Shown here piece after piece: positions 445 through 25,525 of a DNA stretch of 64,000 bases (positions within the stretch are counted from its first letter, which is position 1; each line of letters begins with the position of its first letter). Source of the stretch: Tubulanus polymorphus (taxonomy: Eukaryota; Animalia; Nemertea); contig NC_134030.1 of assembly GCF_964204645.1 (NCBI RefSeq), positions 19,738,210 through 19,802,209 of the forward strand, written 5' to 3'. A program made the position numbers and the translations under genes. The notes beneath the pieces are model-generated. The model saw only the letters and a program-made list of their open reading frames with translations, had not been told where the DNA came from and searched no databases.

Positions 445-630
445 AGTGGACAGGATCCAGTTCCACAATTATATGGGTCCAGGATCCAGTTCCACTATTG
501 TGTGGGTTTTTAATTTGACACTGGAACCAGTTCCACAGTAAGTGTGGGTTTAATATAATTCTGAACCCAGTTTCACAGTTGTGTGGGTTTAATTTGACTC
601 TGAACCCTGTTTCAATTCGACACAGCCCAG
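445..630. repeat. ~39-40 bp minisatellite family D (GGATCCAGTTCCACAGTTGTGTGGGTTTAATTTGACTCT)
   Basis: Tandem copies; the same family recurs elsewhere in the window. Confidence 0.8.
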
Positions 631-2659: not shown

Positions 2660-3089
2660 TCCAGTTGCACAGTCGTGACTTCTTCGATCCAAAAGTGGTC
2701 TTCAATCTTCTTAACCCTTTCAGCGCTGACTAATTAATACCCCATAGTGCTGGAGATAATTTGAAAATTCTAAAAAATTTCACCCTAGTGCGTTGAATAA
2801 CGGGAATACCACTATAGTGCGTCTACACCGCGGCGCGGTGTATCGTTAGTTACTAGTATTTCACTATGTTTGACACGTGCTGCCATTTTTCAAGAGATAA
2901 TTACTAATTACATCAATACACCACAATGCGGTGTACTAGCAAAATCCATCACTGATTTATACACCGAACTGCAGTGTAGACGCACTGAAAGGGTTAAAAC
3001 TGGTCTTAAAATTGTTAGATTAGCTATAATAGAACTAAGTTGGTCTTAGACTGGTCTTAAATCTAAGCGATGACCATGCAACCGGCCCC
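2660..3089. mobile_element. Host MITE (family B; termini like GGCCGGTTGCA...TGCAACCGGCCCC) interrupted by family A
   Basis: Ends ccagttgcacagtc and gaccatgcaaccggcccc. Related copies at 1-30, ~39985-40110 (uninterrupted, inverted) and ~40780-40856. Confidence 0.6.
2715..2993. mobile_element. piggyBac-like MITE (~280 bp, family A), nested in another MITE
   Basis: TTAA|CCCTTTCAG...CTGAAAGGG|TTAA, with internal ACACCGC-N3-GCGGTGT palindromes. Confidence 0.8.
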
Positions 3090-4439: not shown

Positions 4440-7400
4440 TTATAAGTCTCCCGCGTCGTGAGTAACTGTTTCTGGTTTCTCGGTCCCGGGAGCCTCAGTC
4501 GTCGGGGCCTCGGTCGCTGGGGTCTCGGTTGGTTCATCGGTTTTCGTTGATTCTGAAAATTACAAATATTCTAAATTTTACGAAACCATTCCAAACCCGA
4601 CACAAATAATTACTAAAAACTCAGCGAGGGAGGAACGTGGCAGTGTCTCAAATACCATCAGCTTAGAAATCCCTCTGAGGGAAGTGGCAGAATCTCACGA
4701 TGTCATCAGGTTCAAATCCCTGCGAGGGAGGAACGTGGCAGAGTCTCACGATGTCATCAGGTTCGAATCCCTGTGAGGGAGGAACGTGGCAGAGTCTCAC
4801 GATGTCATCAGGTTCAAATCCCTGCGAGGGAGGAACGTGGCAGAGTCTCACGATGTCATCAGGTTCGAATCCCTGTGAGGGAGGAATGTGGCAGAGTCTC
4901 GCGATGTCATCAGGTTTAAATCTCTGCGAGGGAGGAATGTGGCAGAGTCTCACGATGTCATCAGGTTCAAATCCCTGTGAGGGAGGAACGTGGCAGAGTC
5001 TCACGATGTCATCAGGTTCGAATCCCTGCGAGGGAGGAATGTGGCAGAGTCTCACGATGTCATTAAGTTTGAACTCAAGCCTAGAAAAGATGTATCAAGA
5101 TCGCGATCATGATTTTACCTTTATCCGTAGAACTGGTTTCAGATTTATCTAACTGAAGCGGTTCAGAAGGTTCTTCCTTTTTAGTTTCCTCAGTTTCGCG
5201 TTTCTGTTTCGGTTTTCTGTATTTCGGCTTTTCGTCCGTTGTTTTATCCGAATCAGTTTTCACATCTTCCGGCTTTTTCTTCGCCTCTTCTTCTAGAAAC
5301 AACGCGAAACCAAAAACAAATATTATAAATTTTCGCTTCTCGAAAAAGGATGAAATCGATAAATCAAAAGTTTGTCGATTTTTAACTCAGTTTTGATATC
5401 TCATCTTAAAACGAAGTCATGCTTAGATTTATGGAAAACGTAATCACAAACAAAATACCCCTCGCCCATAATAAATACATGTAACATTAAAGTGAAGAAA
5501 ATATCTAGAAATTCAAAACATCAAAGAGAAAATCAAGCGAGAATTCGATTTAGTGTTTCTTGAAATCTTATTTTTTCGATATTCCCAAGTTAAAAGTGCA
5601 TCATCATATTTTGAAGACGGCTGCAAAGCTGAAAATGCATATTTCGAAGATTGCTCCAATAAGTTGAAAATGCATATTCTGAAGGCTGAAAATGCATCTT
5701 TTAAAGCTTGTTCCAAAAAGTTGAAAAGTATTGCCCGGATTCCTGGATCATGCAACTTACTACTTAAATCGTACCGCACACCAAAACTGATTGAAGTGCA
5801 GGCAGCGCTGTTTACAAAACAAATTTTTTATCAAATGATATGCCATTTCAAGAACTAGTTTTATACAGAAGGCTGGTGACCAATTTGACTCGGGTACCCC
5901 TTTCTCAAGATTCCCAAAAAGCTACAATAAAAACAGTGGTTCTGACCTGATCCATGATCGATATGTCTGATTTGGATATTGTCGGAGCCACCCACCCGTA
6001 TCGGAAACACATATCACAACACATAACCCTATCTCTGAAACATCACTTTGCAATTGACGAAAAAGTTCAACTCTTGAATCAATTTAGCACATTCAGCAGT
6101 GCATCTACACTGCAGTGCAATGTATAGTGGACTAGTAGACCGCATCATGATGCATTGATGTTATTAGTTTTTATCTCTATTAAGGCTAGCAGCACCTGTC
6201 AAACAGAGTGAAATGTAAGTAACTAACGGTACACCGCACCGCGGTGTAGCCGCACTACAGCCGTTTGCATACTATTCAATGCACTGGGGTGAAATCTTAA
6301 AAATTTCCATCACTTTCAGGCAATGAGTGGGCTAACATCTTCATGGATTCAGATTCAGAATACACCCCTTCATAGATTCAGATTCAGAATACACCCCTTC
6401 ATGGATTCAGATTCAGAATACACCCCTTCATGGATTCAGATTCAGAATACACCCCTTCATGGATTCAGATTCAGAATACACCCCTTCATGGATTCAGATT
6501 CAGAATACGTCCCTTCATGGATTCAGATTCAGAATACGCCCCTTGATGGATTCAGATTCAGAATACACCCCGGAGCTATTGCATTCTTCAACGAAACTAC
6601 GAAACCATTTCGTAAAAAGCGCCGCCTGCTTTTGAAGCGATGAATTATTTACCGACACGGCATTGACCTGTTATAGAACCCGCGCTACGGATCGAATACT
6701 CGTACGAAAAAAAAAAAAAAAAAAAAAAACAGTCGACCATTTCACCGCGTTGAACAAAAAAATCCCACGCAGGCGCGGATCCAGCCTACCGCTGTTAACG
6801 CTTGAGCCGCTCTCGTGGATTCTTAAGATCGATTTTTTTTGAGGCATCGAACACCAGAGCGTAGATCTTACTTTCAAAAAAATGCATGTACGAAACTAGG
6901 TTCTCTTAGTTCTATATACTATTTGACTTTGCTATTCGATTGAACGGAATTGGCTCGACGGAAACGTTCGGATTTCGAAATTTTTCGACCTCCATGTGGA
7001 AGTGGAAAAGTTGCAATGAAGGACCCCACTCCCGATTTATGGTGCTGCGATAATGTCTTAACGCTTTTAGTGCGGCGTATACATCAGTGATAGACTTTGC
7101 TAGTGCACCGCATCGCGGTGTATTAATGTTATCAATAATTAGTTTCTATCGCTATTAAAAGATGGCAGCACCTGTCAAACGCAGTTGAATATCAGTAACT
7201 AACGATACGACGGGACGCGGTGTAGCCGCACTAAAGCGGTACGCCCGGCGGAATCCAAAATCATCTCCCGCACTTTCTCGGCTATCAATTGGTCAGCATT
7301 GAAAGGGTTAAAGCGGTATTTAGCGTAAGAGGCTGGATCCACCCCTCAATCAGTTCCCGACGACGAACTCGCCTTTCCTCCGCGGTTTTCGCGATCGCTT

Positions 7401-10400
7401 CACGTTCGCCGAATCTTTCGTATCGCGCGACCGTTTTCGATCGCGCAATTTCTCGCGCGCGTTCGATTTCATTTTCTCCCGTTGCTCGGAGACGTATTTT
7501 TTCAATTCGTCGGCGCGTCTTTTTTCGTCCAGTTGTTTTTGTTTTTCGATGGCCGCGCGTCGCGCGACGCGCAGTTTGATTTCCTGCGTGAACCACGAAT
7601 GTTTTTCGCGCAGCAAGTTCGCGTGGTACTCGATGTGGTTTTTAACCAACACGGGGGTTTTATAACAAGCCGTAGCGTTTTGCTCTTTGCTCATTTTGCG
7701 AAGCCAAACCTGAAGAAATGACAAACAAAACCAACATAGATTGATTACACACAGCTACAAATCAAACGAATGTGGATGTAGTTCCACAGTTGTGTCGGTT
7801 TACCGCAACTGTGGATCCAGTTTCACAGTTGCATGGGGTTTGATAAAACTGTGGATCCAGTTCCACAGTTGAGCGAGTTTGATTATAATGTGGATGCAGT
7901 TCCACAGTTGTGCACGTTTAATTTGACAGCGGATCCAGTTCCACAGTTGAGTGGGTTTAATTCTACTGTGGATCTAGTTCCACAGTTGAGTGAGTTTAAT
8001 TATACTGTGGATCTAGTTCCACAGTTGTGTAGGTTTAATTTGACTGCGGATCCAGTTCCACAGTTGAGCGGGTTTAATTCTACTGTGAATCTAGCTCCAC
8101 AGTTGTACGGGGTTTGATAAGACTGTGGATCCTGTTCCACAGTTGCGTACGTTTAATGTAGCTGTGGATCCAGTTCCACAGTTGTGAGGGTTTAATATAA
8201 CTATGGATCCAGCTCCGCAATTGTGTGGATTTATTTGATTGTGGATCCAGTTCCACAGTTATGCGGGTCTAATCTGACATTGAACCCAGTTTCACAGTTG
8301 CGTGGGTTCATTGTGACTCTGAACCCAGTTTGACAGTTGTGTGGGTTCAATGTCACTGTGAACCCAGCTCCAAACATACTGACTGTGGACCCAGTTCAAC
8401 AGTTGAGAGCGTTTAATGTGAATCCGAATCAAGTTTCACAGTTGTGAGGATTTGATTCGGCTAGCAAGTGCATGTAGTATTAAGTGCATAGATGGATGAA
8501 TAAATACAGAGTGTTTTTCTGAAAAATTTTCTGTAATTTTCAACTCAATAGAACAGAGACAAGCAGAATACACACAAACAACAAGGACATTACATTGAGA
8601 TTACAGACATATTTGCGCAAACGAGTTCAACCTTAAATCAGTTCAAGTGGCTAATATTGACTTCAACTAATTTTCCGATGAGGACTCTGTGATCTACTGT
8701 GGCTATCGAGGATTCCAGTTGTGACAATAAGGATCTACCAGGTGTCGCTAGTGTGCAGTAGGACATCAACTACTGTGCTAAGAGGATTCCACTTGTGGCA
8801 AGTGAGGATCCACCAGGTGTCGCTAGTGCGCAGTAGGACGTCAACTACTACTGTAACAATACAGAATTCCATTTGTGACAAGTGAAGATCCAAAATTGCC
8901 TCACATATGAACCCAGATGTCAATATGAATTTAGGTATCTAAAGACATCATTTGCCATGATTTTTTTGGATAAAAAACCAAAAACAAAATCATAATTTCA
9001 AAACGACCAAGTCCAATAAATTTGAAATAACTGCTAGGCACGCCATCTGGTGGCGTCAGTGCTAACCGATGCAGGCACGTAGTCCCCATTCTAAACTCGT
9101 TTGCGTTCCCGTTAACGCATATCAACGAATTACCAGTAGAAGTAGTTTTATTATCGGTATTATCACCGCCAGCGGTCGAGTTGTCGTTCTTCGTCGTCGT
9201 CGTTTTCTCATCCGGTTTCGGTTTCGGTTTGTAAATCTTCGCCTTGTTGACGAGATATTTGATTTCGCGGTCCAACGCCGTGTACTTGATGGCGATGTCC
9301 TCGACGCGGAGAACCGGATTTTTCGTTATCGACGTCGCCTTCTGTTCTTTCGACGTCTTGTTCAACCACTCCTAAACACATTTTTCGAAACATTTTTTTC
9401 AACCGTTTCCTCAAAATGACTATAAGGACACGTTTAACCCTTTCCACGGATCTACACCACAGTGCCGAGTATAAATGGGTGATGGACTTAACTAGTTCAC
9501 CGCATTGCAGTGTATTGACCTAATTAGTCATTACTTTTTATCTTTCTTCTCTTTAGCAAGATGGTAGCATCTGCCTAACTCAGTAAAATATCAGAAATTA
9601 AGGATACGCCGCACTGTGGTGTAGACGCACTAAAGCGGTTGCTCGTTATACAACCATTTGGATCTCAGGCCGGGGAATGTGAGAAGACTTTTGAAAGAGC
9701 AAAAAGGAACAAAAAGGGCGTACTAATAAAAAGGGCAAGGAAGCGCAATGCAAAAATGGAGGTCTGGAAAATTTTGAAATCTGAATTGATTTTAAAACAA
9801 TTTCCTGGCATTTCAAAAAAAAAAATTGCCTCAAAAGAAATTGCAATTTTTCAAGTAATGAGTTAATGGTAATTTTTGCTTTTTGGAACGGGCTCCTGGT
9901 ATTTCTACTGATGGTAGTGTCTCCACCACGATTGAGGGTATTTCTAAGTCAGTAGTATTTCAATAGGAAAATATTCTGATTTTGAGAGTAGTTCGATATT
10001 TTTGGGAGTAGTTGAGCTTTTAATAAATAAGTAACTAAATGGTTGTGTTAATCAAGTGCGGGTAAGAAGGGCAGTTGTTACGCATATAGGGCAAGCGGTA
10101 TGTATCGAATGTAAAATCTTTTTTGAGGCTAGGTTGATCAAGTCATATAATTCAAATTTGGAAAAGAACCCATGTGACTAACATTCAACGAACTGCTAGT
10201 CACGCCATCTGGTGGTCGGATAGCTCACTAAGCCCATTCGAAGTGAAGAAAACTAAGAAACACCCAAATTCAAAAATAATCGGATAAAAATCGAAGAAAT
10301 AGACGCCCGATCGGAACGTACCCACGTATCGTTGATCAGCTTCGACAGAACGTTCACTTCGACCTCGGTGAAAATCGGCTCGTCTTTCGTCAAGTTGCGG

Positions 10401-13400
10401 ATGCTCGTCAGGAAGAACTCCGATTGGTTGAGCATGCTGCGCAACGCCTCGACCGCTTTCGGCCGACCGTCGAGTTCTTTCACGCGATAGAACACGTCCT
10501 TCGTCGCTTCTTTCAACTCTTTCAGTTTGTCTTCGTAAGCCTGGAAACAAGACGCAACTAGATCAATATGTAATCGCGTATACGCGCAGAACGCTCGGTG
10601 GAAATGTTTGACAAAATGGTTTCTAGAATTTTCAGTCCGAATTCAATAGCAGGAACAAGAATAAGGAAGATGGTGAGGGAGGTTGAAATATAATGATACA
10701 GCGCTGCCAACCTCTGAATGGTGCTATCAGTAACAAATCAGTTTTTTTCAGTAACATTTCATTGAAATATGAAAGAAAATTATCAAATTAATCAGTAATC
10801 AACAGTAAGATCATCAGTAACATCTTTCATATTTCTGTTCAAATTAATCAGTTATCAAAAGTAAGACCCTCATAAACATCTTTCATATTTCTGTTCAAAT
10901 TAATCAGTAATCAACAGTAAGACCATCAGTAACATCTTTCATATTTCTGTTCAAATCAATCAGTAATCAACAGTAAGACCCTCAGTAACATCTTTCATAT
11001 TTCTGTTCAAATTAATCAGTAATCAACAGTAAGACCCTCAATAACATCTTTCTTATTTTTGTTCAAATTAATCAGTAATCAACAGTAAGACCATCAGTAA
11101 CATCATTCATATTTCTGTTCAAATTAATCAGTAATCAACAGTAAGACCCTCAGTAACATCTTTCATATTTCTGTTCAAATCAATCAGTAATCAACAGTAA
11201 GACCGACCCTCAGTAACATCTTTCTTATTTTTGTTCAAATTAATCAGTAATCAACAGTAAGACCATCAGTAACATCATTCATATTTCTGTTCAAATTAAT
11301 CAGTAATCGACAGTTAGACCCTCAGTAACATCTTTCCTATTTTTGTTCAAATTAATCAGTAATCAACAGTAAGACCCTCAGTAACATCTTTCCTATTTTT
11401 GTTCAAATTAATCAGTAATCAACAGTAACCCCCTCAGTAACATCTTTCATATTTCTGTTCAAATCAATCAGTAATCAACAGTAAGTTTTTTCTTCGTCAT
11501 TGTAGGTTTTTACTTCAAACCAGACGAGAAAATGAAGACAACCAAAGACTAGCTGATGTACGCACTAGTCGACTATTCAACGGAGAAATGAAACGAACCT
11601 TCGCGGGAGTGTCATCCTCAGTTTCGTACTGCCAATCGGACGCCGTGTTTAATAATTCGAACAACTTCGTTCGTTCGTCTTCGGTCGAACATTTCTCATA
11701 CTGAGGCTGATACAGTTTGTCCTTCGTATCGAATATGTACGATTCCAGTTCGTTTTTGACTTTCTCCAGTAGGCGGCGTTCGTCGTCATGTTTTTTCATT
11801 TCAGCAATTCTGAAAATTCATAAAATATTTTTGCTTGGCAAACGATGAAGTCAGAACTGTTCAACTGTTCGTGTAGACAAATCTAACCCACACAACTGTG
11901 GAACTGGATTCAGAGTCAAATTAAACTCACACAACTGTGGAACTGGATCCAGAGCCAAATTAAACTCACACAACTGTGGAACTGGATCCAGAGTCAAATT
12001 AAACCCACACAACTGTGGAACTGGATCCAGAGTCAAATTAAACTCACACAACTGTGTAACTGGATCCAGAGTCAAATTAAACCCACACAACTGTGGAACT
12101 TGATTTAGAGTTAAATTTAACCCACACAACTGTCATTCAGAGATTCAGAGTCAAATTAAACCTACACAACTGTGGAACTGGATCCATAGTCAAATTAAAC
12201 CCACACAACTGTGGAACTGGATCCAGAGTCAAATTAAACCCACACAACTGTGGAACTTGTTTTAGAGTTAAATCTAACCCACACAACTGTCATTCAGAGA
12301 CAGAGTCACACCTGCACAACTGTGGAACTTGATCCAGAAACTACTCAAACCCTAATAACCGTGGAAATGGTCTTGTCCTGGTAAGCGAGCGTTGAATTTA
12401 CCTGGTTTTAAATGCAGTCGTCCTCTCAGCAGATGGATCAGTGATATCTACGATTTGAGATTCTACTTTGATGTCTTCTCTCAAAATAACCGGTTTCGGT
12501 TTTTCTGGTTCTTTCTTTTCCGTCTATGGAAGAAAAATCGCAGAATAAAGTGAGGCCGAGGTTCATGAGCGTAGGCCGAGATACGAGATATCCCAATGGT
12601 AGCAATATACGAAATACATCGTACGAGATATCTCGAAGTAACAATCTGATCAGGACTGGAAATATGAGATATCTCAGAAGTAGTAATGGTAGATACCGGT
12701 ATATCATAGTAGAGATATCTCAAAGTAATTATGATTGACATTTATATAGCGCAGGTATCCTAACCAGAGTGAGTTCAGATGCGCTCCAAATTTGGTATTT
12801 TTACCCCCTGGCCTATAACTCTATTCAATGTATCAGGCATCTCTCCCTGGGGAGAAGTAACATCCGAGCAGCTATTAGGTGCTCAGGAGCCATTAATCAG
12901 ACCAGGTACCTATTTACTCCTGGGTGGAGAGAGGCAATGTAGTGTATCGTGCGAGGACACTATGGTAATGTATCGGGTTCGAATCCACGACCTGGCTTCC
13001 CCAATGTTCAACACTCTAACCGCTCACTCAAGTAAAATCCGAGCAGCTACAAGGCGCTCAGGAATCATCTATGGGGCCAGTTACCTATTTACTCCTGGGT
13101 GGAGAGAGGCAATGAGGATAAGTGTCTTGTCCGAGGACACTTAGAGTCGAACACTCGCCAACTCCGCTCGTTCAAGTAATAATTGTGGAAGAACTGATAA
13201 TTTGAGATATCTAAGGAGAGATACCGGTAGTAGCAATGATAGTTGAACTGGAAATATGTAATATCTCGTAGTAGAGATATCTCATACAACTATAACTGGA
13301 AGTACAAACAGTTACAAGGGGGACAGACCCAATACTAAGAGATAGCAGTTGAAAGAATTATGAATTAAAAGGTTTTCTCAAAAGTGGACTCACAGTATCG

Positions 13401-16400
13401 TTCTTTGTCGATTCGGTCTTGTTTTTATCATCTGTCGATTCGGTTTTCTTTTCGTCTTTCTTTTCATCTTTTTTCTCGTCTTTTTTCTCATCCGGTTTCT
13501 GTTCTTTTTTGCCCTCTTTCGATTCTTCTTTCTTCTCTTTGTCCGCGTCTTTCGTTTCGTCAGTTTTCTTCGCGTCATCTTTTTTTGTCGTTTCCTAAAG
13601 AAAGATTTCCACGTATTATTTCTAGACAAACTGAACTTTCTGGCACGTTCATCCTGCGCGGGATTTGAACCTGATGACATCCTAAAACTCTGCCACGTTC
13701 CTCCCTGGCAGGGATTTGAACCTAATGACATCGTGAGACTCTGCCACATTCCTCCCTTGCGGGGATTTGAACCTGATGACATCGTGAGACTCTGCCACGT
13801 TCCTCCCTGGCGGGGATTTGAACCTGATGACATCGTGAGACTCTGCCACGTACCTCCCTCGCAGGGATTTGAACCTTTTCATATTGAACGTTTTGTTCCC
13901 ACCTGACGAAGTCACACGTACTTCTGTTTCAACTTACTTTATCCTTCGTTTCCTCCTCTTTTTTATCTTCTTTCTCATCAACCGTCACTTTTTCATCTTC
14001 GTCCTTTTTACCGCCGCTGAAGAAATTACTGATCGTGCTGCCCAATTCTGAAACAAATCAACAAACGCAAAACAATGATGACGAACCAACCGATCATGAT
14101 ATTTCGGGGTCAAAATCTGCGGCTAGAAAATCCGTTTATCGGCGGGAAAATATGGTAATGTACATGTATAGCGGCATATTTTGCGGGTCCTTTGATAAAG
14201 TTTAGATTTGAGAGCCTAAAAATACAGTTCGAAGTTCAATCGAAAATAACTTTTTGTCAATTTTGTCAATGTAAGGCTGAGTGCTTGTCACGCTACCTGG
14301 CGCGATAACTGGTGTTGCAGCTAACCCAATGACATAAATAAATCAAGTTCCATAGTAAGTATTATATTATACCATGGTTGATGCCTTTTAATTGCAACCT
14401 ATAGGACGCTGACCGGTCGTTGGTATCTTCAAGAAACTTACTCGATAGCGTAGATTCCTCTTTCGTGTCTTCGGCCGACGGAGCCTTTTCGAAAACCGAT
14501 TCCACTTTATCCAAATGCAACAAACCGCTTTCGTCCATACGGAAATGAGCCTTCACGCCCTTCGCTTCGGTGGTGGCGCCGTGCGTGTCGTGGGCGTCGG
14601 CAACTCCGGTGAGTGACACCTTCTTCAAATTCAACGCCCCCAGCATCCTAGAAATGCGACCGCTTTATTATAGCGCGTGACAACGCTGTCGATTCGAGGG
14701 AACACTTTCAAAAGGGTTTTAGAAAGATTGATAGTGTCCATAACAAATCTCATTTAGTGACTTTCAAAGACTTTTTGACTCCGATCAAAGGACTTATATA
14801 TAATACTTAAACCAGGAATCCTGAACCTGCAGGCATTTCTATAATCTTGCCAGTTTGATTTCTTGTTTCAGGGCATCCTCGCTTATCAGGGTTTGATTGC
14901 CTCCCGCAGAAGCTCCCGCCAGCACAAACCCTGACCATAGACCCTTCATTGGGCTATAGGTTGCTATTCAGCGGCCACCAGTCCACATATCTGGCCAATC
15001 AGATGCGTTATTTGGATTGACCGAATCTGCCGGAGAAAAACAACGTATCTGATTGGCTAACTACGTAAGACTGGTGACCGCTTAGCAGCAACCAGTCCAC
15101 CCAAGAAAATCTTGGGCAGCATAATGGACCGATGCATGGTCTGCGGTCAGGGGCTTGTATTAAACAACGTATCTGAAAGGTTTGTGTTGGTACGAGCTTC
15201 GGCGGGCGGCAATCAAACCCTGGCAAGCGAGGATGAACTGTAACAAGAGATCAAGAAATAAACACCGAACGACATGACGCCACTTACTTGCGCGCTTCTT
15301 CGTCCAGAAACGTAAGGTCGCCGTAGTTAACTTCGAATGAGAAATCTTTCGTGTGTTTGTTGAACGTCATCACTTTCTTCTGCGGGAACGGATTCATCGT
15401 ACCGAACAGCGTACGCTTGACGAGCTTCGTCGATTCTTTGCCCGATTCGTCCACTTTCGTTCGTTCGAATTCCACCTAAATTTCGCGAATAATACGAATA
15501 CGAAAGTGAGCGATCGATTGAACACGAAGAGCACCTACCAATCCCGTACCCTCCCATTCCGTTCCCCTCCCCCTTTCCCTCTCTCCAAACTAGGATTCAA
15601 ACTATTCAGATATTAGACATTTTATCAGCACACTTTCAAAAACTGATCGTCCACACTTCACATGTGTTCAGTGCTTCATCTGAGATATTTTCAATTGAAA
15701 ATGAACTACAAACACCAGATATTAGACATTTTATCAGCACACTTTCAAAAACTGATCATCCACACTTCACATGTGTTCAGTGCTTCATCTGAGATATTTT
15801 CAATTGAAAATGAACTACAAACACCAGATATTAGACATTTTATCAGCGCACTTTCAAAAACTGATCGTCCACACTTCACATGTGTTCAGTGCTTCACCTG
15901 AGACATTTCTAATTGAAAATGAACTACAAACACCAGATATTAGACATTTTATCAGCACACTTTCAAAAACTGATCGTCCAACTAGGATTCAAACCGGTAT
16001 TAGCTGCGATCACACGGAGATAATTTGGCCCCCCGAGTTAAAATTTGGCCCATTTTTTAATCAGAGAGCGCTTTCACATGTAAACCACTCACTCGATACT
16101 GACAACAATGCTTAAACAAAGCGAAGTGAGTCATTTCCAGAACCAGCTAGAAGTAACACGCTATGATTTGGGCCTGGTCGAACGTTAGTGGACAGGGTTA
16201 ACAGGTGCATGGTGTGATCACTTCACGTGTGTTCAGCGATCTAAGACATTCTAATTTTTAATAAGCTACAAACACCAGGTATTCTATCAGCACACTTTCA
16301 AAAACTGATCGTCCACACTTCACATGTGTTCAGGACTTCATCTGAGACATTTTTAATTGAAAATGAACTACAAACACCAGATATTAGACATTTTATCAGA

Positions 16401-19400
16401 ACACTTTCAAAAACTGATCGTCCACACTTCACATGTGTTCAGTGCTTCACCTGAGACATTTTTAATCGAAAATGAACTACAAACACCAGATATTAGACAT
16501 TTTATCAGCACACTTTCAAAAACTGATCATCCACACTTCACATGTGTTCAGGACTTCATCTGAGACATTTTCAATTGAAAATAAATGACGAATACCAGAC
16601 ATTAGACATTGCATCAGAACACTTTTGAAAAGTGATTGTATACACTACAATAGTGAATTTGGTGGTTCCAGGTAGCTCAAAATTGGTTAGAGATGACTCA
16701 GTTGAGTTGTCAACTACAATTGTGTTGGTATCTTGGTATTTTTTGACCAGTTAACTCTAACCAACTTTTGAGAAACAGGCCCAAGATTTATGTACACCTG
16801 CATTACAACAAAGAGTGTATTGCTTACAAATTTTACAGTGTGTGAACTCTTTATTTGACGAAAAAGTAATTTTCGTGACGTCTTATTTTCACCAAGTTTT
16901 GCATGCAGAATAAAATCTATTTTTAGCAGAAATTCTAATACCGGGGTAATGTGAGTTTCAAAAATGCTAACTATAGGAAAATTTACGAATTCGAACCTGA
17001 TAGCATCGCGAAACTCTGACACAGTCCGCCGTCGCGGGGAACCTGGTGTCACCGCGAGACGGAACAACTTATCCTTTTAAAGCATCATTACAATCAAAAC
17101 AATGAAAAAGCAAAAAAAAACTGGTGGTTTGATAGACTTCGTACGTATTGGTTTTTACCCCAGGGAAAAACTGTCATTTGAAATTCTTATTAATTAAAGG
17201 ATCAGATTGATGATCTCAGGATTTTTCACATTTTTCAGATCCTTACAATTAGCTATACCCGTATTTCACATCTGATCTGGACAGATTGAAAAAAAATTTC
17301 TAAAACCTAAAAAACAGCTTGTACATTAATTCTGAGCTCGACGGTATAAGGAATAAAAAAGATTGCGTAAATATTTTGACCGGACATTTTTGAATTTTTC
17401 AAACATTTTCATGATTTCTTGCAGATTTTTCATGTTTTTTTTTTTTCACTTTTCAAGCGAACATCGATTCCAAATCAATTTAACCCCTGATTATGTTAGG
17501 GGGAATAAGCTAAATATTGCTTTGAAAACCTCGATCACACGCAGCCTATAAAACCACCAGTCCGATACACGACGCCTTCTGCACCGAGAATCAAAAAACA
17601 AACGAAATTTATAAAATTCGAAAATAAAAAAACGAGCGTGACCAACCTGCGTTAATTGGCTAATAAACGAAACCTAATTAAAAACAGCAATTCAGAATCG
17701 TTAAAATAGTTCCTTTGAAATCACCAACACAGTGCTTCGTTTAACCCTTGCAGTTCATCTACACCACAGTGCGGTGTATAAATTGGTGCTGAACTTTGCT
17801 AATACACTGCATCACGGTAAATTGATGTTATTTTTGGGTAATTTTAATCTCTATTGGAACTTGGTTCTCATGACTGTGCGACCGGGTTCATACACAGCTG
17901 TAAAACCGGGTTCTCACAACTGTAGAACCGGGGTTCACACAGCGGTAAAACCGGGTTCTCACAACTGTAGAACCAGGTTACACCGTCGTCGAACTGCATG
18001 AGACTAGCAAATATCCACACCCAAAAGCAGATTTAATATTCTTCGCAATCAGGTCGCCATTTTTTCAGTCTCAGCTTTTCTCACCTGAATAGGGAATATA
18101 TTGCCGTCCTTGACTCCGAATCGCAAAACCTTGAAGCCCTTACTGAGGTATGCGGCTTGGTAAACGGCGCCCATCACTGCCGCTTCATCGGTATTTATAC
18201 TTTTACCGAGTTCCGTCCTAGAATGACGAGAAAAATGAGTTCATTTTACCGCGCGTCAAATACAGGCGCCGGCCGCGTGAAAAGGGTTAAAATCGACAAA
18301 ACTTACTTTCCGGTGGTTTCGATTAGGATATCTCGAACTTTAGGCATCCTCGTCACTCCGCCCATCAGTATTACTTCTTTTATTTCGATCTACGCAAGAA
18401 AACACGGAAAAACTTGTACATTTTTAGGACGCGGACTAGAGAATCATATGCCGTGATGTGGGTATTCTTGGAGCCACCCACTAGCGAAAGGAATGGCTCC
18501 TAATGCTATAATATGCATATTGTTTGAGGCACTTAACGAAGAGGGATTGTTCCTGATGACATAATGATTTTCTTATTCTTGGAGCCATCCACTAGTGAAA
18601 AGAATGGTTCTTCACGCCATAATATACATAATTTGTGAGGCATTATATATGATGTTCTAATATTTGGAGCCAACCACAAGAGAAATGGATGGTTCCTGAT
18701 GCAATAATATGCATATTTTTAGGCACTTATCAAGGAAGCATTGTTTCCAATGACATTAAGATTTTCTTATTCTAGGAGCCACCCGCTAGAGAAAGGGATG
18801 GTTTCCAATGCCATAATTTGCATAATATTTGCATATTCGCTTAAGAAAGGGATGACTCCTAATGACATGATGTTCTCATTCTATGAGGCACATTGCCTTA
18901 CAATTGCGAAAGTCAGAGTCATTTGAGTCATCGCTGAAGTCAGATAAGACTTACCCACGTCATGTGCGACATTTTCAAAGCGTCTTCGATCGGTTTTTTA
19001 ATGCGCCCGAACAGATCGCTGGTCATCTCTTCGAATTCGGCACGCGTTACTTTGGCCTTGAAATCTTTGTCGTCCAACAAACTTTCAACCTAAAACAGAT
19101 TCATAACAGTAGTAGATTAACCCTTTCCGTGCTGACTAATTAATACCCTAAGTGCTCGGGAAAATTTTAAAATTTGGGAAAATTCCACCCTAGTGTGTGG
19201 AATAATGGGAATACCACTATAGTGTATCTACACCGTGGTGCGGTGTATCAATAGGTACTAATATTTCACTATTTTGACGGGTGATGTCATCTTTGTATAG
19301 AGATAAAAACTAAAAACTAATTACATTAATACACCACAGTGCGGTGTACTAGCAAAATCCATTACCGATTCATACACCGCACTGCGGTGTAGACGCACTG

Positions 19401-22400
19401 AAAGGGTTAATATTCAAATTTCGAAAAGTACCAAAGAGATACCAGCAACACCAGATGGCGCAATAATACACCGAGTTATTCAAAGCGAAAATTTTCTCGA
19501 TTTTTTAGGCTTCCAAATCCGAAAATTATCTAACGAGTCATCGGATAGATATAAGATTCACATTCTCGCGACGCTCAGTGAATGGTCTTGATTTAATAGA
19601 TTCAATGAAAATCGATTTACATGTGAGAAAAGTCGATTGGAATATAATCGAAACGTAGAAGAAATTGAGGCGCGGTATCCCAGTGCCACTAGCAACGCTG
19701 GCGGGTTATGGCCAAACCTCACTTCCCTTAGTAGCTTCGCAGGTATATCATCGCAATAAACTAATTGCAACTGGTAGTTAACGTACTACTTACTACGCGA
19801 AAGTGACACCTAGTGGATCCTCACTTGCCACAAGCGAAACAGAAATATAGTTACCTGAGCGTAGTGATCGGCGTTAGCGCTGAGAACCTTCATCACTCGT
19901 CCGGCCTCTTTAAACAGTTTGGCCATCGCGCGCGCGTTCTTCGTCACGTCGTTTTTCGTTTTTTTCTGTTCGTTGAATAATTTGGCGAGATGGTCGCGCA
20001 ATCTGAGCTGCCACTCGACACCGCCGAGCGTCTGGTCGAACCTTAAATAAAAAAAAAACAAAATCAAATACATCAATAATCTAACTGTCACTCTCTATCT
20101 GTTCTCAGTGCTTTACCTGAGATATTCTTAATTGAAAATGAACTACAAACACCAGACATTAGACATTTTATCAGCTCACTTTCAAAAACTGATCGTCCAC
20201 ACTTCACATGTGTTCAGTGTTTCACCTGAGACATTTCTAATTGAAAATGAACTACAAACACCAGATATTAGACATTTTATCAGCAAACTTTCAAAAACTG
20301 ATCGTCCACACTTCACATGTGTTCAGTACTTCACCTAAGACTTTTCTAATTGAAAATGAACTACAAACACCAGATATTAGACATTTTATCAGCACACTTT
20401 CAAAAACTGATCGTCCACACTTCACATGTGTTCAGTGCTTCACCTGAGACATTTTTAATCGAAAATGAACTACAAACACCAGACATTAGACATTTTATCA
20501 GCACACTTTAAAAAACTGATCGTCCACACTTCACATGTGTTCAGTGCTTCACCTGAGACATTTCTAATCGAAAATGAACTTCAAACACCAGATATTATAC
20601 ATTTTATCAGCACACTTTCGAAAACTGATCGTCCACACTTCACATGTGTTCAGTGCTTCACCTGAGACATTTCTAATCGAAAATGAACTACAAACACCAG
20701 ATATCAGACATTTTATCAGCACACTTTCAGAAACTGTTCATACACACTTTACATTCACATTGGGTAGGCCCAAATTTCTGGACGGGTTCAGATTGCAGAT
20801 TGTAGTAAAATGATATATTCTTACATACCCAACCCCTAACACCGTCACTTGCGGATTATTTTCTGCGAATCCACGATCTTTCATTTTAACGACTTGATAA
20901 CCTAAAATACGAAAATGAAATATCGAATTTGATATCTATTTCAACTTTTGTCAAATTCGTACCTGCTCCCACCCTACATGGCTCCCTACTAACTAACGAT
21001 TAAAAAGTTTAGCGAGTCACCACGAATCTCTCGGTACTTACTGACAATAGTAGCCGACATGCTCGTCGAACCCATATCGACGAACATGTAATGCTGTTTC
21101 GTCGCGTTGAACTCCTTACGTCGGAAAACGCCGTAATTCAACGCGACCGCCGAATTGTCGTTCATCAACTGCAGCACGTTCAAACCGACCAGTTCGCCGG
21201 CTCGTAACATCGCGCGGCGTTCCGCCTGGTTGAAATACACCGGCACCGTGATCACGGCGTCTTGAATCTTTTGTTCTGAAACGCGAGCGAGAGAGAAAAT
21301 AAAATAATCGCGGCCAAAATTTGCGACGTTCATAGATATCGTTCTAAGCCTTCCGCTACACTGAAGTGCGGTGTATTAATCGCTGGTGACTTTGCTGATA
21401 CACCGCATCGCAATGTATCGATGTAATTATTAATTAGTTATTTATCTCTGACTATTGAAAGATGGCAGCACCGTTGAAACGTTGTGAAATATTAGTTACT
21501 AGCAATACACCGCACTGCAATGTAAACAGAATATAGCCGTGTGCCCGTTATTCAACGCAATGGGGTGGAATCTTCTTATCATCAAATTATCTTCTTATTA
21601 TCAGATTATCAAATTATTTCCAAAGCCTTTTCGGGTGTTATTTAGTCAGCCCTGAAAGGGTTTAAAAGGTTGCGAGCCTATGATCCAATAGACGTCACCA
21701 TTCTTCTTTCATCGCAATCGGGGGAAAGCCGAATGTTTACTTAAGAAAATCATAGATTTTGTCAAATTGATTGAAACTATATCTTATCTCAGCATAAGCC
21801 TGTATGAAAATTTATGCATCTTCTATCTTCCACATTACGATGTGTTTATTCACAAATTCTTACCCGCAAATGTTTCGGCCAAGTGCTTCGCGTTTTCTAG
21901 AATCATAGCTATCAGTTCTTCGGGAGCATAGATCGTCGACCTAATCGAAATATGAAATGAACAAAAATAACTGAATAGTCCATGTACCAAAGCGGAGTCT
22001 CAAGATGCCATCAGGATCAGGAATAGGATCGAATCCCCACAAGGGAGGAACACGAGCCTCGTGATGCCAACATGCAAGGTCCATACAGATCAGTATTCCA
22101 GGATATGAGTAGTTTTTGAAGCAGTTTTCAAGTTGAGGAAATTTCAAATTTTGAGTAAGTGTCTACATCACTTTCATATCTCAATTACAGCAGACTCCTC
22201 CTAAATCGGATTATCTTATTCAATGGTTTTGTAACCAAATGTTTAGCCTATACACCACTAAACTTGGTTTCTAATTTCGTAACCGCCTAATTGGGGGAAA
22301 AAATAATCCTGGTCCCAACTCTTATCGATTTAGGCGTAGTTCACTGTACAACTAACAAACTAGATAAATAATTGGGACAATCCCTATTTTAAGATAAAAA

Positions 22401-25400
22401 AAACAAACAAGATAAAATTTATAATCGCCAATTTCTCAAAATTGAAGGACTTTTGAACATTGTGCTCAAATTGAAGGAGTTTCAAGAAGCTTAAAAAGTA
22501 TTTTCCGTTTAGAAGGAGTTTCTAAGGGATCAAGAAGTCATAGGGACCCTGTCACGTCCTATTTGCAGGATGATCTAATCGACTTACTCGTCTTGTTGAA
22601 ATACAACCGTGCCGGTTTGCGGATCCTCTTTCAGGTCGTAGTACGGGAATCGTTGCTGGAACTGTTTCACGTGCGGATTGTCGAGTTTCTTCCCGAGGAC
22701 GGACAGCAAAAACCAGTACGCGTGCTTCGGCGACTTCGCGATCTACGAAATATTCGAAAGACGTGAAAGTCGGGACCGACGCCGCGCGACAAACGCAGTT
22801 ATTTGTAGCGCAAGGACTTGTCACAATTGATAGTGAATGATTAAAATCAGTATCCATGACCGACCCCGGAATCCCGGTACGATAAAAAAACAAGGGTCAT
22901 CTTCGGAATGATGATTAGTTGCGTCTATTGTTTTTTATGATATCACTTTAAAACCCTTTCAGTGCTGACTAATTAATAACCTCTAGTGCTGGAGATAATT
23001 TGAAAATTTTGAAAAATTCCACCCTAGTGTGTTGAATAACGGGAATACCACTATAGTGCGTCTACACCGCGGCGCGGTGTATCGTTAGTTACTAGTATTT
23101 CACTTTATTTGACAGGTGCTGCCATCTTTCAATAGAGATAATTACTAATTACTTATTACACCAATACACCGCAGTGCGGTGTACTAGCAAAATCCATCAC
23201 TGATTCATACACCGCACTGCGACTGTAGATGCACTGAAAGGGTTAATGAAGTACCGAAACATATATTCCTTTTTTACAATACATACCACTGGTATCGCGC
23301 TTTCTCCTATTTCTCTCTCTCCGTCTTTGATCGATAAAACGGTCGGCGTTTTACGCTTGCTTTCCCTGCAAAAATTCATCGAACAGCGAAATAAAATCGA
23401 GTGTTTGCCTAGCTCGAGAAAATCCCGTTCTCGTGCGGTCGTTCAACTTCTTAAAATCATGACCCGCACTACATAAAGACTGTGCCTGTTTTATAGACCA
23501 GTTTCAATTTGAACCCTCGGGGGGGGGGGGGGCTGGTTTTATAGACCAGTTTTAACTTGGGCTGGTTTTATAGACCAGTTTTAACTTGAACCCTACAGGG
23601 GCTGGTTTTATAGACCAGTTTTAACTTGAATCCTACAGGGGCTGGTTTTATAGACCAGTTTTAACTTAAACCCTGCCGGGGCTGGTTTTAAAGACCAGTT
23701 TTAACTTGGGCTGGTTTATAGACTAGTTTTAAGTTGAACCCTGCAGGGGCTGCTTTTATGGACCAGTTTTTAACTTGAACCCTGCAGGGGCTGGTTTTAT
23801 AGACCAGTTTTAACGTTAATCCTGCAGGGGCTGGTTTTTAAGAACCAGTTTTAAAAATCCTGCAAAGGCTGGTTTTATGGGCTGATTTCGTGCACCAGCT
23901 TAACCCAAACCCCGAGAACTGGTTTAAAGACCAATTTCAACTTAATCCAAGATTTAAAAGACAAAACCCATGAATACAAAATTTGGATCTAGCTTTGAAA
24001 CTGACCTGTTTAATACCACTTCCATTGGTACACCGGGCTACAAAAAAAAATATCGAAAACATTTAAATCGCTTATCTAGTAATCATCGAAAAATTCTAGC
24101 TAAATATTTCAAGTGTTATGAATCGAATATGAAAGAACTGCAAACTGTGAAATCAGTTCTTGTTCGCTTGTTTTACAACTCACCTTCACAATCGCGATTT
24201 TCATAAATTCACCTCCAAAATCTATAGAAATCACGGCTAAACCGTCTGAAAATAGAAAACGTACATTTTCATAAGGGGATCTGAATAGTAGCAAGCCAAG
24301 GAGCCCTATTTTCTGGAGAAGGGTCTATATAGATCCAATCATTAGGCAATTTATGAGGTCATACGGGGATTAATGAAGGCAACCATCTTTTCTGGAAGTG
24401 TCTGAGGAAATTTGATGATGTCATAGGGGGATTTATGGTGGCAGACATCTTTTACGTAGCCCAAGGCTTTATACAGAGATGCTAGGGCCAAAGTACCAAA
24501 ATTCCGGAATTTAGAACGGGCGTTTTTGCATCGCCGGAGATGCAGTGTCACGATCGGCATCTTTCATCTGAAAATACGACGGCAGGCATTCGTTGTGCTT
24601 CACATCCCTCGCTGCCTTCTTATGCCGCGCCTTTTTCCCGCCACTACCGTATTTGACCTGGTCTTTACAAACGACACAGTAAAGCAGTATACCGCTGTCA
24701 ATTGCCTTTATATCGGCCGACTCCCGACTGACAATCTTTCCGTGCGTGCTCATTTTGCAGACCGTCCCGCAAAAAGAAAGTTACAAAGCTGCGTGCCTCA
24801 GGACATAGCACGCGTGTGGTAATAATTAAGATGATATTTATTAAATATTATCTTAATTATTACCACGTGCATCTTCACATTGTTGGCCGTTAGCGGGACG
24901 ATGTATAACGGCGCGTAAAGATAATTGACTTTTAATTGGAAATGGCGTCACAACAGTGGCGCTCCGCCTACGCACGCACAGATACAACAACAAGCACACA
25001 TATATACATTGTATCAGAACGTCCTCGGAAACGGAGACCAAGATAAAATAACACAGAAGCGACGACGAGTACAAGCAAACAAACGCTTTTACGGTCCGTG
25101 CCATTACTGGTCGCCGCGAGGAATTCTCACCAAATTTCCGGAATTGACATCGGCGATCCTAAATTTCCGGAATTCCGGATATTTCCGGAAAACTAGCATC
25201 TCTGTTTATAGAGCAAAACGCTAGGAGGCGAATTGCTGATGTCATTTAAGGGGAATGTTGAAGCAGCGAAACACTTTTCTGGAAAGATCAAATCACCTTT
25301 GATGTGATGTGGTAGAGTGGGATTTATGAAGGAAATCATGCGTCTGGAAGAGTCTGTAGAAATAGGTAATTCAATAAGAGGGGGATATTAAAAAAGCTTT

Positions 25401-25525
25401 CAGACAAATTGAAAGACTAGATTACTGCATTTTTTGTTTTTCTTACCGACAAGTTGTGATAAGGACACAAACAGTACGAACAATCCAATCGCTGCGCACT
25501 TAATCTTCTGTTTGCAAGTCGCCAT
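4440..25525 (-). CDS. HYOU1: Hypoxia up-regulated protein 1 (GRP170/ORP150), ER-lumenal Hsp70/Hsp110-family chaperone and nucleotide exchange factor; ~1036 aa, 22 coding exons
   Basis: Coding exons, all GT-AG and phase-consistent: 25525-25447 (signal peptide [26 protein letters not shown]), 24245-24184 ([21 protein letters not shown]), 24037-24006 ([10 protein letters not shown]), 23365-23287, 22742-22588, 21940-21864, 21275-21042 ([17 protein letters not shown]...FVDMGSTS), 20901-20829, 20041-19855, 19089-18955, 18389-18307 ([11 protein letters not shown]), 18217-18085 ([11 protein letters not shown]), 15475-15288, 14647-14442, 14047-13938, 13594-13394 (KKDE-rich insertion), 12523-12402, 11809-11599 (KNELESYIF), 10540-10322, 9371-9134, 5292-5119, 4552-4440 (ends HDAGDL*). 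Sum is 3111 nt. The motifs are characteristic of HYOU1. Confidence 0.96.
4622..5070. repeat. 51-bp minisatellite family E
   Basis: GTCATCAGGTTCAAATCCCTGCGAGGGAGGAACGTGGCAGAGTCTCACGAT, about 8 copies. Also at 13650-13880 (reverse) and 58820-59215. Confidence 0.95.
6340..6570. repeat. 29-bp tandem repeat
   Basis: TTCATGGATTCAGATTCAGAATACACCCC, about 8 copies. Confidence 0.95.
7042..7307. mobile_element. piggyBac-like MITE family A (diverged), nested in a GGATCC-TIR element 6770-7347
   Basis: TTAA flanks at 7038-7041 and 7308-7311. Outer TIRs are caggcgcggatccagcct and aggctggatccacccct. Confidence 0.65.
7350..7709 (-). CDS. HYOU1: Duplicated alternative HYOU1 exon ('21b'), paralog of exon 9134-9371; mutually exclusive (GC donor at 7373/7372) or alternative terminal exon
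   Basis: Acceptor ttttgtttgtcatttcttcag|GTT is phase 0, as for exon 9371. [21 protein letters not shown] matches [21 protein letters not shown] at 13/21 residues. The frame is open for 119 codons to TGA at 7352-7350. There is a candidate phase-1 donor AAG|gcgagt. Confidence 0.72.
   Translation of the reverse strand, partial: VWLRKMSKEQNATACYKTPVLVKNHIEYHANLLREKHSWFTQEIKLRVARRAAIEKQKQLDEKRRADELKKYVSEQREKMKSNAREKLRDRKRSRDTKDSANVKRSRKPRRKGEFVVGN
7770..8460. repeat. Minisatellite family D array
   Basis: About 17 diverged ~39-bp units. Confidence 0.9.
10770..11485. repeat. 56-bp tandem repeat, preceded by a hAT-like terminus CAGCGCTGCCAAC at ~10699
   Basis: AAATTAATCAGTAATCAACAGTAAGACCCTCAGTAACATCTTTCATATTTCTGTTC, about 12 copies. 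Confidence 0.9.
11880..12365. repeat. Minisatellite family D array (reverse)
   Basis: CACAACTGTGGAACTGGATCCAGAGTCAAATTAAACCCA units. Confidence 0.9.
12725..13170 (-). mobile_element. tRNA-derived SINE plus partial tandem copy
   Basis: On the minus strand: A-box-like TGAGCGGTTAGAG, B-box GGATTCGAACCC, central GTGTCCTC..GCACGATACAC...GCCTCTCTCCACCCAGGAGTAAATAGGTA, and an L2/CR1-like tail GCGCTATATAAAT. Confidence 0.65.
14874..15235. mobile_element. TIR element (MITE)
   Basis: CATCCTCGCTTATCAGGGTTTGATTGCC...GGCAATCAAACCCTGGCAAGCGAGGATG. The same terminus recurs at ~34810-34828. Confidence 0.6.
15610..16670. repeat. Family C 109-bp arrays interrupted by a ~240-bp insertion (related copy at ~63540-63760)
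   Basis: Tandem units at 15610-15980 and 16220-16650. Confidence 0.85.
17120..17561. mobile_element. TIR element
   Basis: Imperfect inverted termini ACTGGTGGTTTGATAGAC...GCCTATAAAACCACCAGT. Confidence 0.45.
18455..18890. repeat. Degenerate tandem repeat (TTCTTGGAGCCA.CC.CTAG.GAAA)
   Basis: About 4 diverged units. Confidence 0.6.
19121..19406. mobile_element. piggyBac-like MITE family A
   Basis: TTAA TSD, CCCTTT/AAAGGG TIRs, near-identical to 2715-2993. Confidence 0.8.
20100..20750. repeat. Family C 109-bp array (~6 units)
   Basis: Near-identical tandem units. Other arrays at ~35945-36085, ~41305-41570 (reverse) and ~58030-58360. Confidence 0.9.
22954..23242. mobile_element. piggyBac-like MITE family A
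   Basis: CCCTTTCAGTGC...GCACTGAAAGGG|TTAA. Confidence 0.8.
23490..23940. repeat. ~40-bp tandem repeat (GGGGCTGGTTTTATAGACCAGTTTTAACTTGAACCCTGCA)
   Basis: Visible tandem units. Confidence 0.85.
24474..25204 (-). mobile_element. Non-autonomous DNA transposon (hAT-like) with a transposase N-terminal zinc-finger remnant
   Basis: Perfect 12-bp TIRs CAGAGATGCTAG/CTAGCATCTCTG, a 6-bp direct flank TTTATA on both sides, subterminal TTCCGGAA repeats, and an internal [24 protein letters not shown]...KH. Confidence 0.7.

Follow-up and report, generated by a model that had tools for sequence, protein, structure and literature searches.

A candidate mutually exclusive exon in the HYOU1/GRP170 gene of Tubulanus polymorphus that may replace a conserved tail helix with a charged, basic one

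In a 64,000-nucleotide stretch of the Tubulanus polymorphus genome (the window: contig NC_134030.1 of assembly GCF_964204645.1, positions 19,738,210 to 19,802,209), we found that an intron of the HYOU1/GRP170 gene harbors a second exon-like unit (exon B) located downstream of the exon that it resembles (exon A). Exon B is probably a lineage-restricted and rarely used mutually exclusive exon (MXE), whose exclusivity would be enforced by the reading frame and whose use would give a 1,069-aa isoform with both the NEF core and the C-terminal motif. An earlier sequence-only reading had proposed either a mutually exclusive or an alternative-terminal exon at this place: the internal exon with its GC donor is supported by sequence statistics rather than by RNA, while the terminal version is disfavored.

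Table 1. Features of the HYOU1/GRP170 locus, with positions given in the window
Feature	Positions	Strand	Description
HYOU1/GRP170 coding span	4441..25525	(-)	22 exons, 1,036 aa with exon A; in-frame closed exon model
Upstream constitutive exon	10322..10540	(-)	Phase-0 GT donor at 10322/10321; would feed A or B
Exon A	9134..9371	(-)	238 nt (3n+1), phase 0 in, phase 1 out
Acceptor of B	7710..7760	(-)	Branch-point-like motifs, 76% pyrimidine tract, CAG; phase 0
Candidate exon B	7373..7709	(-)	337 nt (3n+1), 112 codons; single copy in genome
GC donor of B	7367..7375	(-)	AAG/GCGAGT, phase 1 as in exon A donor
In-frame TGA	7350..7352	(-)	21 nt past GC donor; CGA in another allele
Downstream constitutive exon	5119..5292	(-)	Phase-1 acceptor common to A and B
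Last coding exon	4441..4552	(-)	Ends HDAGDL-stop

The product of the modeled gene has a hydrophobic N-terminus, as judged by eye, and a C-terminal end (HDAGDL) that differs from the standard xDEL. When searched exon by exon, the gene was found to encode an Hsp70-type nucleotide-binding domain (NBD), a helix bundle and an extended C-terminus: one exon matches Pfam HSP70 (E=4e-20), exon 11809-11599 corresponds to the helix bundle of Sse1 and the nearest cluster of exon 10540-10322 is HYOU1_C. It resembles the GRP170/HYOU1/Lhs1 proteins in its Hsp70-type NBD, acidic insertion, Sse1-like bundle, extended C-terminus and retention-like end (PMC4290550, PMC4753570). The part of the protein that matches the Sse1 bundle, which contacts Hsp70 in Sse1 structures, precedes the region encoded by A or B (PMC4753570). 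The gene and exon B are each single copy in the genome at both the protein and the DNA level, so that a second HYOU1 copy as the source of B could be discarded, as could a mobile origin of B.

Exon A, the default exon, encodes two helices with a conserved 11-residue motif, followed by KPKPKP and a disordered linker rich in T, N and D, and contains three N-glycosylation sequons. Its splice sites are weak, with an acceptor of 40% pyrimidine and a donor that is weak too. In the RNA-like run X4, exon A is covered at a depth of about 53 and is joined to the upstream exon within a contig (joint 9370-10321, with CT..AC ends). The related animal locus L003 carries exon A with identical phases.

The unit within the intron was confirmed with the coordinates, phases and lengths that had been claimed for it, including a phase-0 acceptor before 7709, a frame open for 119 codons from 7709 to the TGA at 7352-7350 and a phase-1 GC donor at 7373 that, in the computed exon model, leads to an in-frame 1,069-aa isoform. 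Using splice matrices built from the 21 introns of HYOU1 only, the acceptor of B scores 10.7 (real acceptors of the gene: 0.1-11.8), with one intronic site as high, and its GC donor scores 8.3 when position +2 is ignored (real donors: 0.5-9.2), a value that none of the GT/GC sites at the 17,044 intronic positions of HYOU1 attains. Across the 17 kb of intron, no unused site ranks above this donor, the acceptor comes second, and the two bracket B precisely and in phase. No variant falls on the GC donor bases among the variants listed; another donor candidate for B at 7369 was rejected, being weak and in phase 2. Including both A and B, as the sequence-only reading rightly stated, or neither of them, shifts the frame, since both lengths are 3n+1. 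In the 22-exon model, the computed products are of 1,036 aa with A, 1,069 aa with B and its GC donor and 981 aa with B as terminal exon, while early stops give 957 aa when both are included and 872 aa when both are skipped; these stops precede a junction by 287 and 141 nt, respectively.

An open frame is by itself of modest weight, since 82 of 3,000 dinucleotide shuffles of B are open too. Coding-versus-intron scores reach 65.4 bits for B and 69.2 bits for A, the best among 372 intron windows being 3.9 bits, and the frame advantage of B is 51 bits (shuffles: mean -9, sd 22, maximum 62.7). The coding signal does not continue past the GC donor: the 60 nt from the donor onward score -5.5. Plus-strand frames across B are also open; an antisense gene over B was rejected, since real exons here are likewise open on the plus strand and the best frame of B is the HYOU1 frame.

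The resemblance between A and B that had been reported (13 of 21 residues identical) proved significant (BLASTP E=5e-7; none of 20,000 shuffles reached the score), over codons 1-21 only of the 112 in B, and the global alignment of A and B scores 3% of self. A shared hydrophobic register had been said to extend over about 45 residues: beyond the homologous codons 1-21, it is borderline in codons 22-45 (p=0.06) and absent thereafter. Residues W2, L3 and K5 of B are conserved with A. Different codons are used at 9 of the 13 residues common to both exons, and silent sites are saturated (pS 0.91, pN 0.34), an excess to which selection on A and the manner in which B was found both contribute in part.

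Exon B contains 36 K/R, 15 D/E, one sequon and one Cys. Following the 21 homologous codons, a single-sequence model predicts an 87-residue charged helix (residues 19-105) that is net basic, in which 41 of the 87 residues are charged and 25 opposite-charge pairs occur, with K/R clusters at its end. The coiled coil that had been suggested for this segment did not survive scrutiny, as no heptad pattern was found and no more than 10 of 25 a/d positions are hydrophobic; the predicted segment looks more like a charged single helix (SAH-like). The conserved 11-residue helix of exon A, which is its most conserved motif, is absent from B: exon B replaces this helix and does not merely modulate it.

The two exons share several properties with tandem-duplicated MXEs (PMC3228551, PMC5740500): they are neighboring homologous internal exons of equal phases with GT-AG and GC-AG sites, their lengths are not divisible by three so that using both or neither is frameshifting, and one is the default exon (A) and the other probably the restricted one (B). 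Compatible splice sites, matching phases and homology (local only) were all found, but length similarity was not, B being 33 aa longer than A, where a difference of at most 20 aa is the default threshold for MXE prediction and not a biological definition (PMC3228551). Unlike in ordinary MXEs, the homology is confined to 21 of 112 codons and B would supplant a conserved helix, not vary it; this candidate pair is intermediate between MXEs of the ordinary type and the subset (roughly 5%) that lacks similarity. The distance from the donor of A to the acceptor of B is 1,424 nt and no docking-selector RNA pairs were evident, the inverted repeats listed lying mostly within a minisatellite with no long pair bracketing A. 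Neither a steric nor an RNA-structure basis for exclusivity was found at A/B, and the route through frameshift and nonsense-mediated decay (NMD) is available.

No contig of run X4 covers positions 7358-7709, which include B, and no B joint appears among the joints listed; contigs drop rare forms, and the ordinary 9134-5292 joint is likewise missing from this run. An X4 contig does cover 5119-5261, its other 589 letters falling elsewhere. No homologue of B was found among 1.84 billion representatives, nor in a length-limited protein homologue search, in Atlas features or in Pfam; Foldseek with the B model was blank, and exon B was not found at locus L003. Since the length-limited search was blank for exon A and the upstream exon too, close relatives are poorly sampled in it and the blanks for A, the upstream exon and B say little; a fold search with exon A returned weak bacterial rows only. 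The best reading is that B is lineage-restricted.

The missing RNA contigs over B and the missing homologues would also agree with B being a former working alternative exon that recently fell silent, a history that would fit with its donor being GC instead of GT (a GT donor may have decayed) and with a density of allelic changes in its 3' 88 nt similar to that in the flanking intron. We consider this young pseudo-exon unlikely: the frame, both splice sites and the coding composition of B are intact in the alleles seen, the allelic changes listed within B are mostly silent (three of four, the fourth being K>R; p=0.07-0.12), and death would have to be very recent, because the deep silent divergence from A reflects long selection on B. 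Exon B might instead be an alternative last exon that ends at the TGA, giving an isoform lacking the C-terminal motif that could be secreted. This would agree with the open frame up to this TGA, with an X4 contig at 7164-7357 (depth 8.8) that could be a 3' UTR and with the recognized existence of homologous alternative last exons (PMC3228551). Yet, the TGA is probably not a selected stop, since another allele has CGA (variant 7352 A>G, in runs X1, X2 and X4), which lengthens the frame to 129 codons, and low-depth patches similar to that contig exist elsewhere in the intron. In addition, the coding signal ends at the GC donor, a near-perfect donor in the right phase would need a coincidence, and no AATAAA/ATTAAA hexamer is present in 7372-5293, between B and the next exon. 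A terminal exon is quite improbable, and the altered ER retention or secretion that had been proposed is disfavored along with it, the GC-donor isoform ending in HDAGDL too.

An equally improbable alternative is that B belongs to a short transcript made from an internal promoter, or from a leader spliced to 7709, and starting at an ATG at codon 6: with the last two exons, it would encode about 200 aa without a signal peptide, the basic clusters of which could act in the cytosol or nucleus. The in-frame Met is missing in A, and K/R clusters such as those of B would be less expected in the ER lumen than in a protein of the nucleus or cytosol. There is also a parallel in Fes1L, which gained nuclear targeting through a spliced tail (PMC4831876). 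Against such a start, the conserved W2, L3 and K5 lie upstream of the Met, the acceptor phase of B fits the upstream HYOU1 donor and B contains an N-glycosylation sequon. It is hardly to be expected, finally, that B is a poison cassette, which would shift the frame when included after A and lead to decay, thereby tuning HYOU1 levels. Such decay would account for the missing B contigs, and the A+B stop does fall at about 7662, well before the next junction; still, a cassette of this kind needs no protein-level conservation, whereas the phase-0 frame of B is open, coding-like and silent-biased throughout.

We therefore favor the mutually exclusive internal exon. Exon A was probably duplicated in tandem long ago in this lineage; in the copy, selection at the protein level would have preserved the acceptor and the first 21 codons while the remainder was remodeled. 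Exon B would now be a regulated internal exon that replaces A in some tissue, stage or condition, through splicing from 10322 to 7709 and from 7373 to 5292. Exclusivity would arise via NMD and not via steric hindrance (1.4-kb intron), and the weak splice sites of A together with the GC donor of B may provide for a regulated switch. GC donors are closer to the consensus and enriched in alternative splicing (PMC2490688), and mutually exclusive pairs usually consist of a default exon and a partner of low and restricted use (PMC5740500). The predicted 1,069-aa product would retain the putative signal peptide, the NBD, the beta-sandwich, the Sse1-like helix bundle and the C-terminal motif and, with core domains and motif intact, should therefore still act in the ER as a nucleotide exchange factor for BiP. 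It would lose the conserved last helix and the glycosylated linker and gain a long charged helix that is net basic. Within the ER lumen, this would most likely affect how clients are held or partners bound, or else the spacing of the acidic tail, and not retention.

Yeast Fes1S/Fes1L is likewise an Hsp70 exchange factor with a C-terminal tail switched by alternative splicing, its exchange activity being unchanged by the switch (PMC4831876). Fes1 is, however, a cytosolic Armadillo-type factor, whereas HYOU1 here is ER-luminal, and the Fes1 switch opposes intronic polyadenylation to splicing and alters location, whereas here an internal exon is duplicated and the C-terminus is kept. We found no report in the open literature of a duplicated alternative exon in the GRP170 tail; splice isoforms reviewed for Hsp70 cofactors concern Hsp105, HspBP1 and Bag1, Grp170 not being among them (PMC4290550, PMC4753570). 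More speculatively, there is some chance, if a rather small one, that a GRP170 isoform specific to this lineage and subject to regulation carries, in place of the conserved tail helix of the family, an 87-residue basic helical rod that has its own role (such as holding secretory clients that are acidic or bind mineral in a single tissue), or that an internal start gives a signal-less nuclear or cytosolic protein derived from this chaperone tail.

The reach of this finding is limited to one lineage and to a candidate exon, exon duplication itself being common. Exon B is a duplicated exon that has diverged past the limits of standard MXE predictors and that ends in a GC donor, and annotation would therefore miss it. 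The extended C-terminal helical region is one of the two chaperoning regions of GRP170 (PMC4290550), and no natural GRP170 isoform exchanging part of it is described in the literature that we found. If expressed, exon B would be a natural swap experiment, in which the exchange core and the C-terminus are unchanged and the tail is different, and the role of the GRP170 tail would become directly testable.

The window belongs to an animal genome of 268 Mb in 77 contigs; searches and structure predictions were done exon by exon, joined full-length models being used only for length counts. Since one exon of the host gene matched Pfam HSP70 (E=4e-20), exon 11809-11599 matched residues 566-615 of yeast Sse1 and the nearest cluster to exon 10540-10322 carries HYOU1_C, the gene's sequence identifies it as HYOU1/GRP170, which two exon searches found as a single copy in the genome.

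Features of the HYOU1 locus (window positions)
Feature	Positions	Strand	Remarks
HYOU1/GRP170 gene	25525-4441	minus	22 exons, closes in frame, 1036 aa
Exon upstream of A	10540-10322	minus	
Exon A (default)	9371-9134	minus	238 nt
Exon B (candidate)	7709-7373	minus	337 nt, in A's downstream intron
In-frame TGA past B's donor	7352-7350	minus	
Exon downstream of B	5292-5119	minus	
Last coding exon	4552-4441	minus	
CCACCAGRTGGCG	9041-9053, 10203-10215, 19448-19460		and six more
75-bp repeat	8694-8849		
39-bp minisatellite	7771-8372, 11874-12336, 486-611		
MITE-like element copies	about 9450-9625, 7100-7250, 6130-6280, 23050-23240, 2810-2990		

Preceded by a CAG, exon B begins in phase 0 at 7709 and has a frame open for 119 codons, exactly as the sequence-only reading had stated. 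That reading had also taken B for a duplicate of A, and this was borne out by identical phases and an alignment at E=5e-7, whose score was attained by 0 of 20,000 shuffles. Within the window, no stretch other than A itself matches A as well as B does (score 69; next 37), and B is single copy in the genome. From the register of about 45 aa proposed earlier, codons 1-21 stood firm (13 identities) while codons 22-45 proved only borderline (p=0.06), and homology was absent past codon 45. Different codons at 9 of the 13 shared residues, together with a pS of 0.91 against a pN of 0.34, point to an old duplication under protein-level constraint, selection on A and ascertainment also contributing to the pS/pN signal. 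Among the allelic variants listed, four fall inside B, three silent and one K>R, a pattern not significant alone (p=0.07-0.12).

The open frame by itself is weak evidence that B is an exon, since 2.7% of its dinucleotide shuffles are open too; four other lines are stronger, two of them the codon comparison with A and the allelic variants given above. A three-periodic coding model trained on the other exons, scored in bits over intron background, gave 65.4 for B and 69.2 for A (372 intron windows: mean -85, best 3.9), and the homologous and non-homologous halves of B each scored as coding. Using splice-site matrices built from HYOU1's own 21 introns, with position +2 ignored for the GC donor, we found that the donor AAG/GCGAGT scores 8.3, exceeding all GT/GC sites among 17,044 intronic positions, and that the acceptor scores 10.7, a value reached by one intronic site. 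The two best unused splice signals flank a homologous, coding-like segment in the same phases as A. GC donors typically sit in a context close to the consensus and are overrepresented in alternative splicing (PMC2490688). B is a real feature, and probably a functional alternative exon that is seldom used.

An alternative-terminal exon had been suggested as well, and the isoform lengths computed for the two outcomes (1069 aa when the GC donor is used, 981 aa when translation ends at the TGA) were correct. The terminal form, lacking the retention motif, is unlikely: in an allele present in three of the runs CGA replaces the TGA, extending the frame to 129 codons, no AATAAA or ATTAAA was found between B and the next exon (this animal's poly(A) signals may differ), and the coding signal stops at the GC donor (score -5.5 for the 60 nt from 7373 onward). 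By its sequence, B thus appears to be an internal exon.

Two samples provided four contig-level runs, which were compared over 5100-10600. Three (X1-X3) behave as DNA; the fourth, X4, not recorded as RNA, is read as RNA, because one of its contigs (depth 53) links 10321 directly with 9370, the skipped stretch having CT..AC ends, showing exon A spliced in. The search for B junctions proposed by the sequence-only reading revealed, in these contigs, A's inclusion and no X4 contig over 7358-7709. This absence does not refute B, since contigs drop rare forms, only part of the joints are listed and the ordinary 9134-5292 joint is likewise unseen among them; B is a minor form at most in this sample.

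The X4 contig of exon A also extends 324 nt beyond the weak donor CTG/GTAATT (9134 to 8810, minus), which may be a retained intron or a case of intronic polyadenylation; a frame read through the donor would end near 8934 (1008 aa, without the C-terminal motif) but scores as non-coding, at -45 bits. Another X4 contig, on the downstream exon, ends exactly 31 nt before the acceptor, leaving 5262-5292 without any contig, which could reflect an assembly-graph fork or a filter.

Homologue searches found no homologue of B among kin that are poorly sampled, as a length-limited search with exon A and its neighbour exon was blank too. The HYOU1 locus L003, on a metagenome contig of a related animal, has an exon A of 44% identity and the same phases, a following intron of 600 nt and no B-like sequence. 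The A-to-B duplication appears lineage-restricted, since B is similar to exon A of this species but not to that of L003; an 11-residue motif common to both A exons is the part missing from B. The L003 protein ends PDEL after two short last exons; the C-terminus in the window (4441-4461, minus) reads HDAGDL, with no standard xDEL retention signal. An exon 3' of the L003 gene (L003:6335-6631) presumably resembles the beginning of a kinase of the MRCK/DMPK type.

Both exons are 3n+1 in length and, as anticipated, including both causes a frameshift: with A and B joined the protein ends at 957 aa, and with neither exon it ends at 872 aa. As to what might enforce the choice, steric exclusion is ruled out because the A-to-B intron, at 1424 nt, is too long, and no long pairing bracketing A was found. 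Decay could do so, since in the wrong combinations stops fall 287 and 141 nt ahead of a junction, and decay is one listed mechanism of exon exclusivity (PMC5740500). Exon A is flanked by weak sites (acceptor 4.1, donor 3.1), exon B by a strong acceptor and a GC donor, plausibly a regulated pair. In phase, splice sites and local homology the two resemble tandem-duplicated mutually exclusive exons, whereas B exceeds their usual length limit (PMC3228551). We propose from these sequence features that B would work like such an exon; a search of open papers found no report of one in HYOU1.

The motif CCACCAGRTGGCG, which we take to resemble the CTCF core, occurs nine times with at most one mismatch (0.06 expected). 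Two exact copies follow the donors at 10322 and 9134 at a distance of 80-110 nt, and at least one further copy lies within the 75-bp repeat. The partly palindromic 39-bp minisatellite reaches to about 60 nt from B's acceptor, on the upstream side, recurs in other introns and has very high copy in X1-X4. A MITE-like element, short, dispersed and bounded by terminal inverted repeats, recurs in the introns of HYOU1, with copies on either side of A and B.

Predicted alone, A forms helices 2-11 and 23-46 and then a disordered linker; B, in a tentative single-sequence prediction, forms a short helix and then a single helix over 19-105. Instead of the coiled coil first proposed, a charged single helix fits this stretch better: of its 87 residues 41 are charged, with 25 pairs of opposite charge at i+3/i+4, and it shows no heptad. 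K/R against D/E counts are 36 vs 15 in B and 16 vs 11 in A; B has one sequon (A three) and one Cys. Extrapolating from the Sse1 match of exon 11809-11599, A and B start past the bundle of helices by which Sse1 touches Hsp70 in their complexes (PMC4753570). Nucleotide exchange should therefore be kept when one exon takes the place of the other, as it is in the yeast isoforms Fes1S and Fes1L (PMC4831876). In GRP170, the C-terminal helical region is itself active as a chaperone (PMC4290550). Replacing A by B may alter how clients are held or partners bound in the ER lumen.
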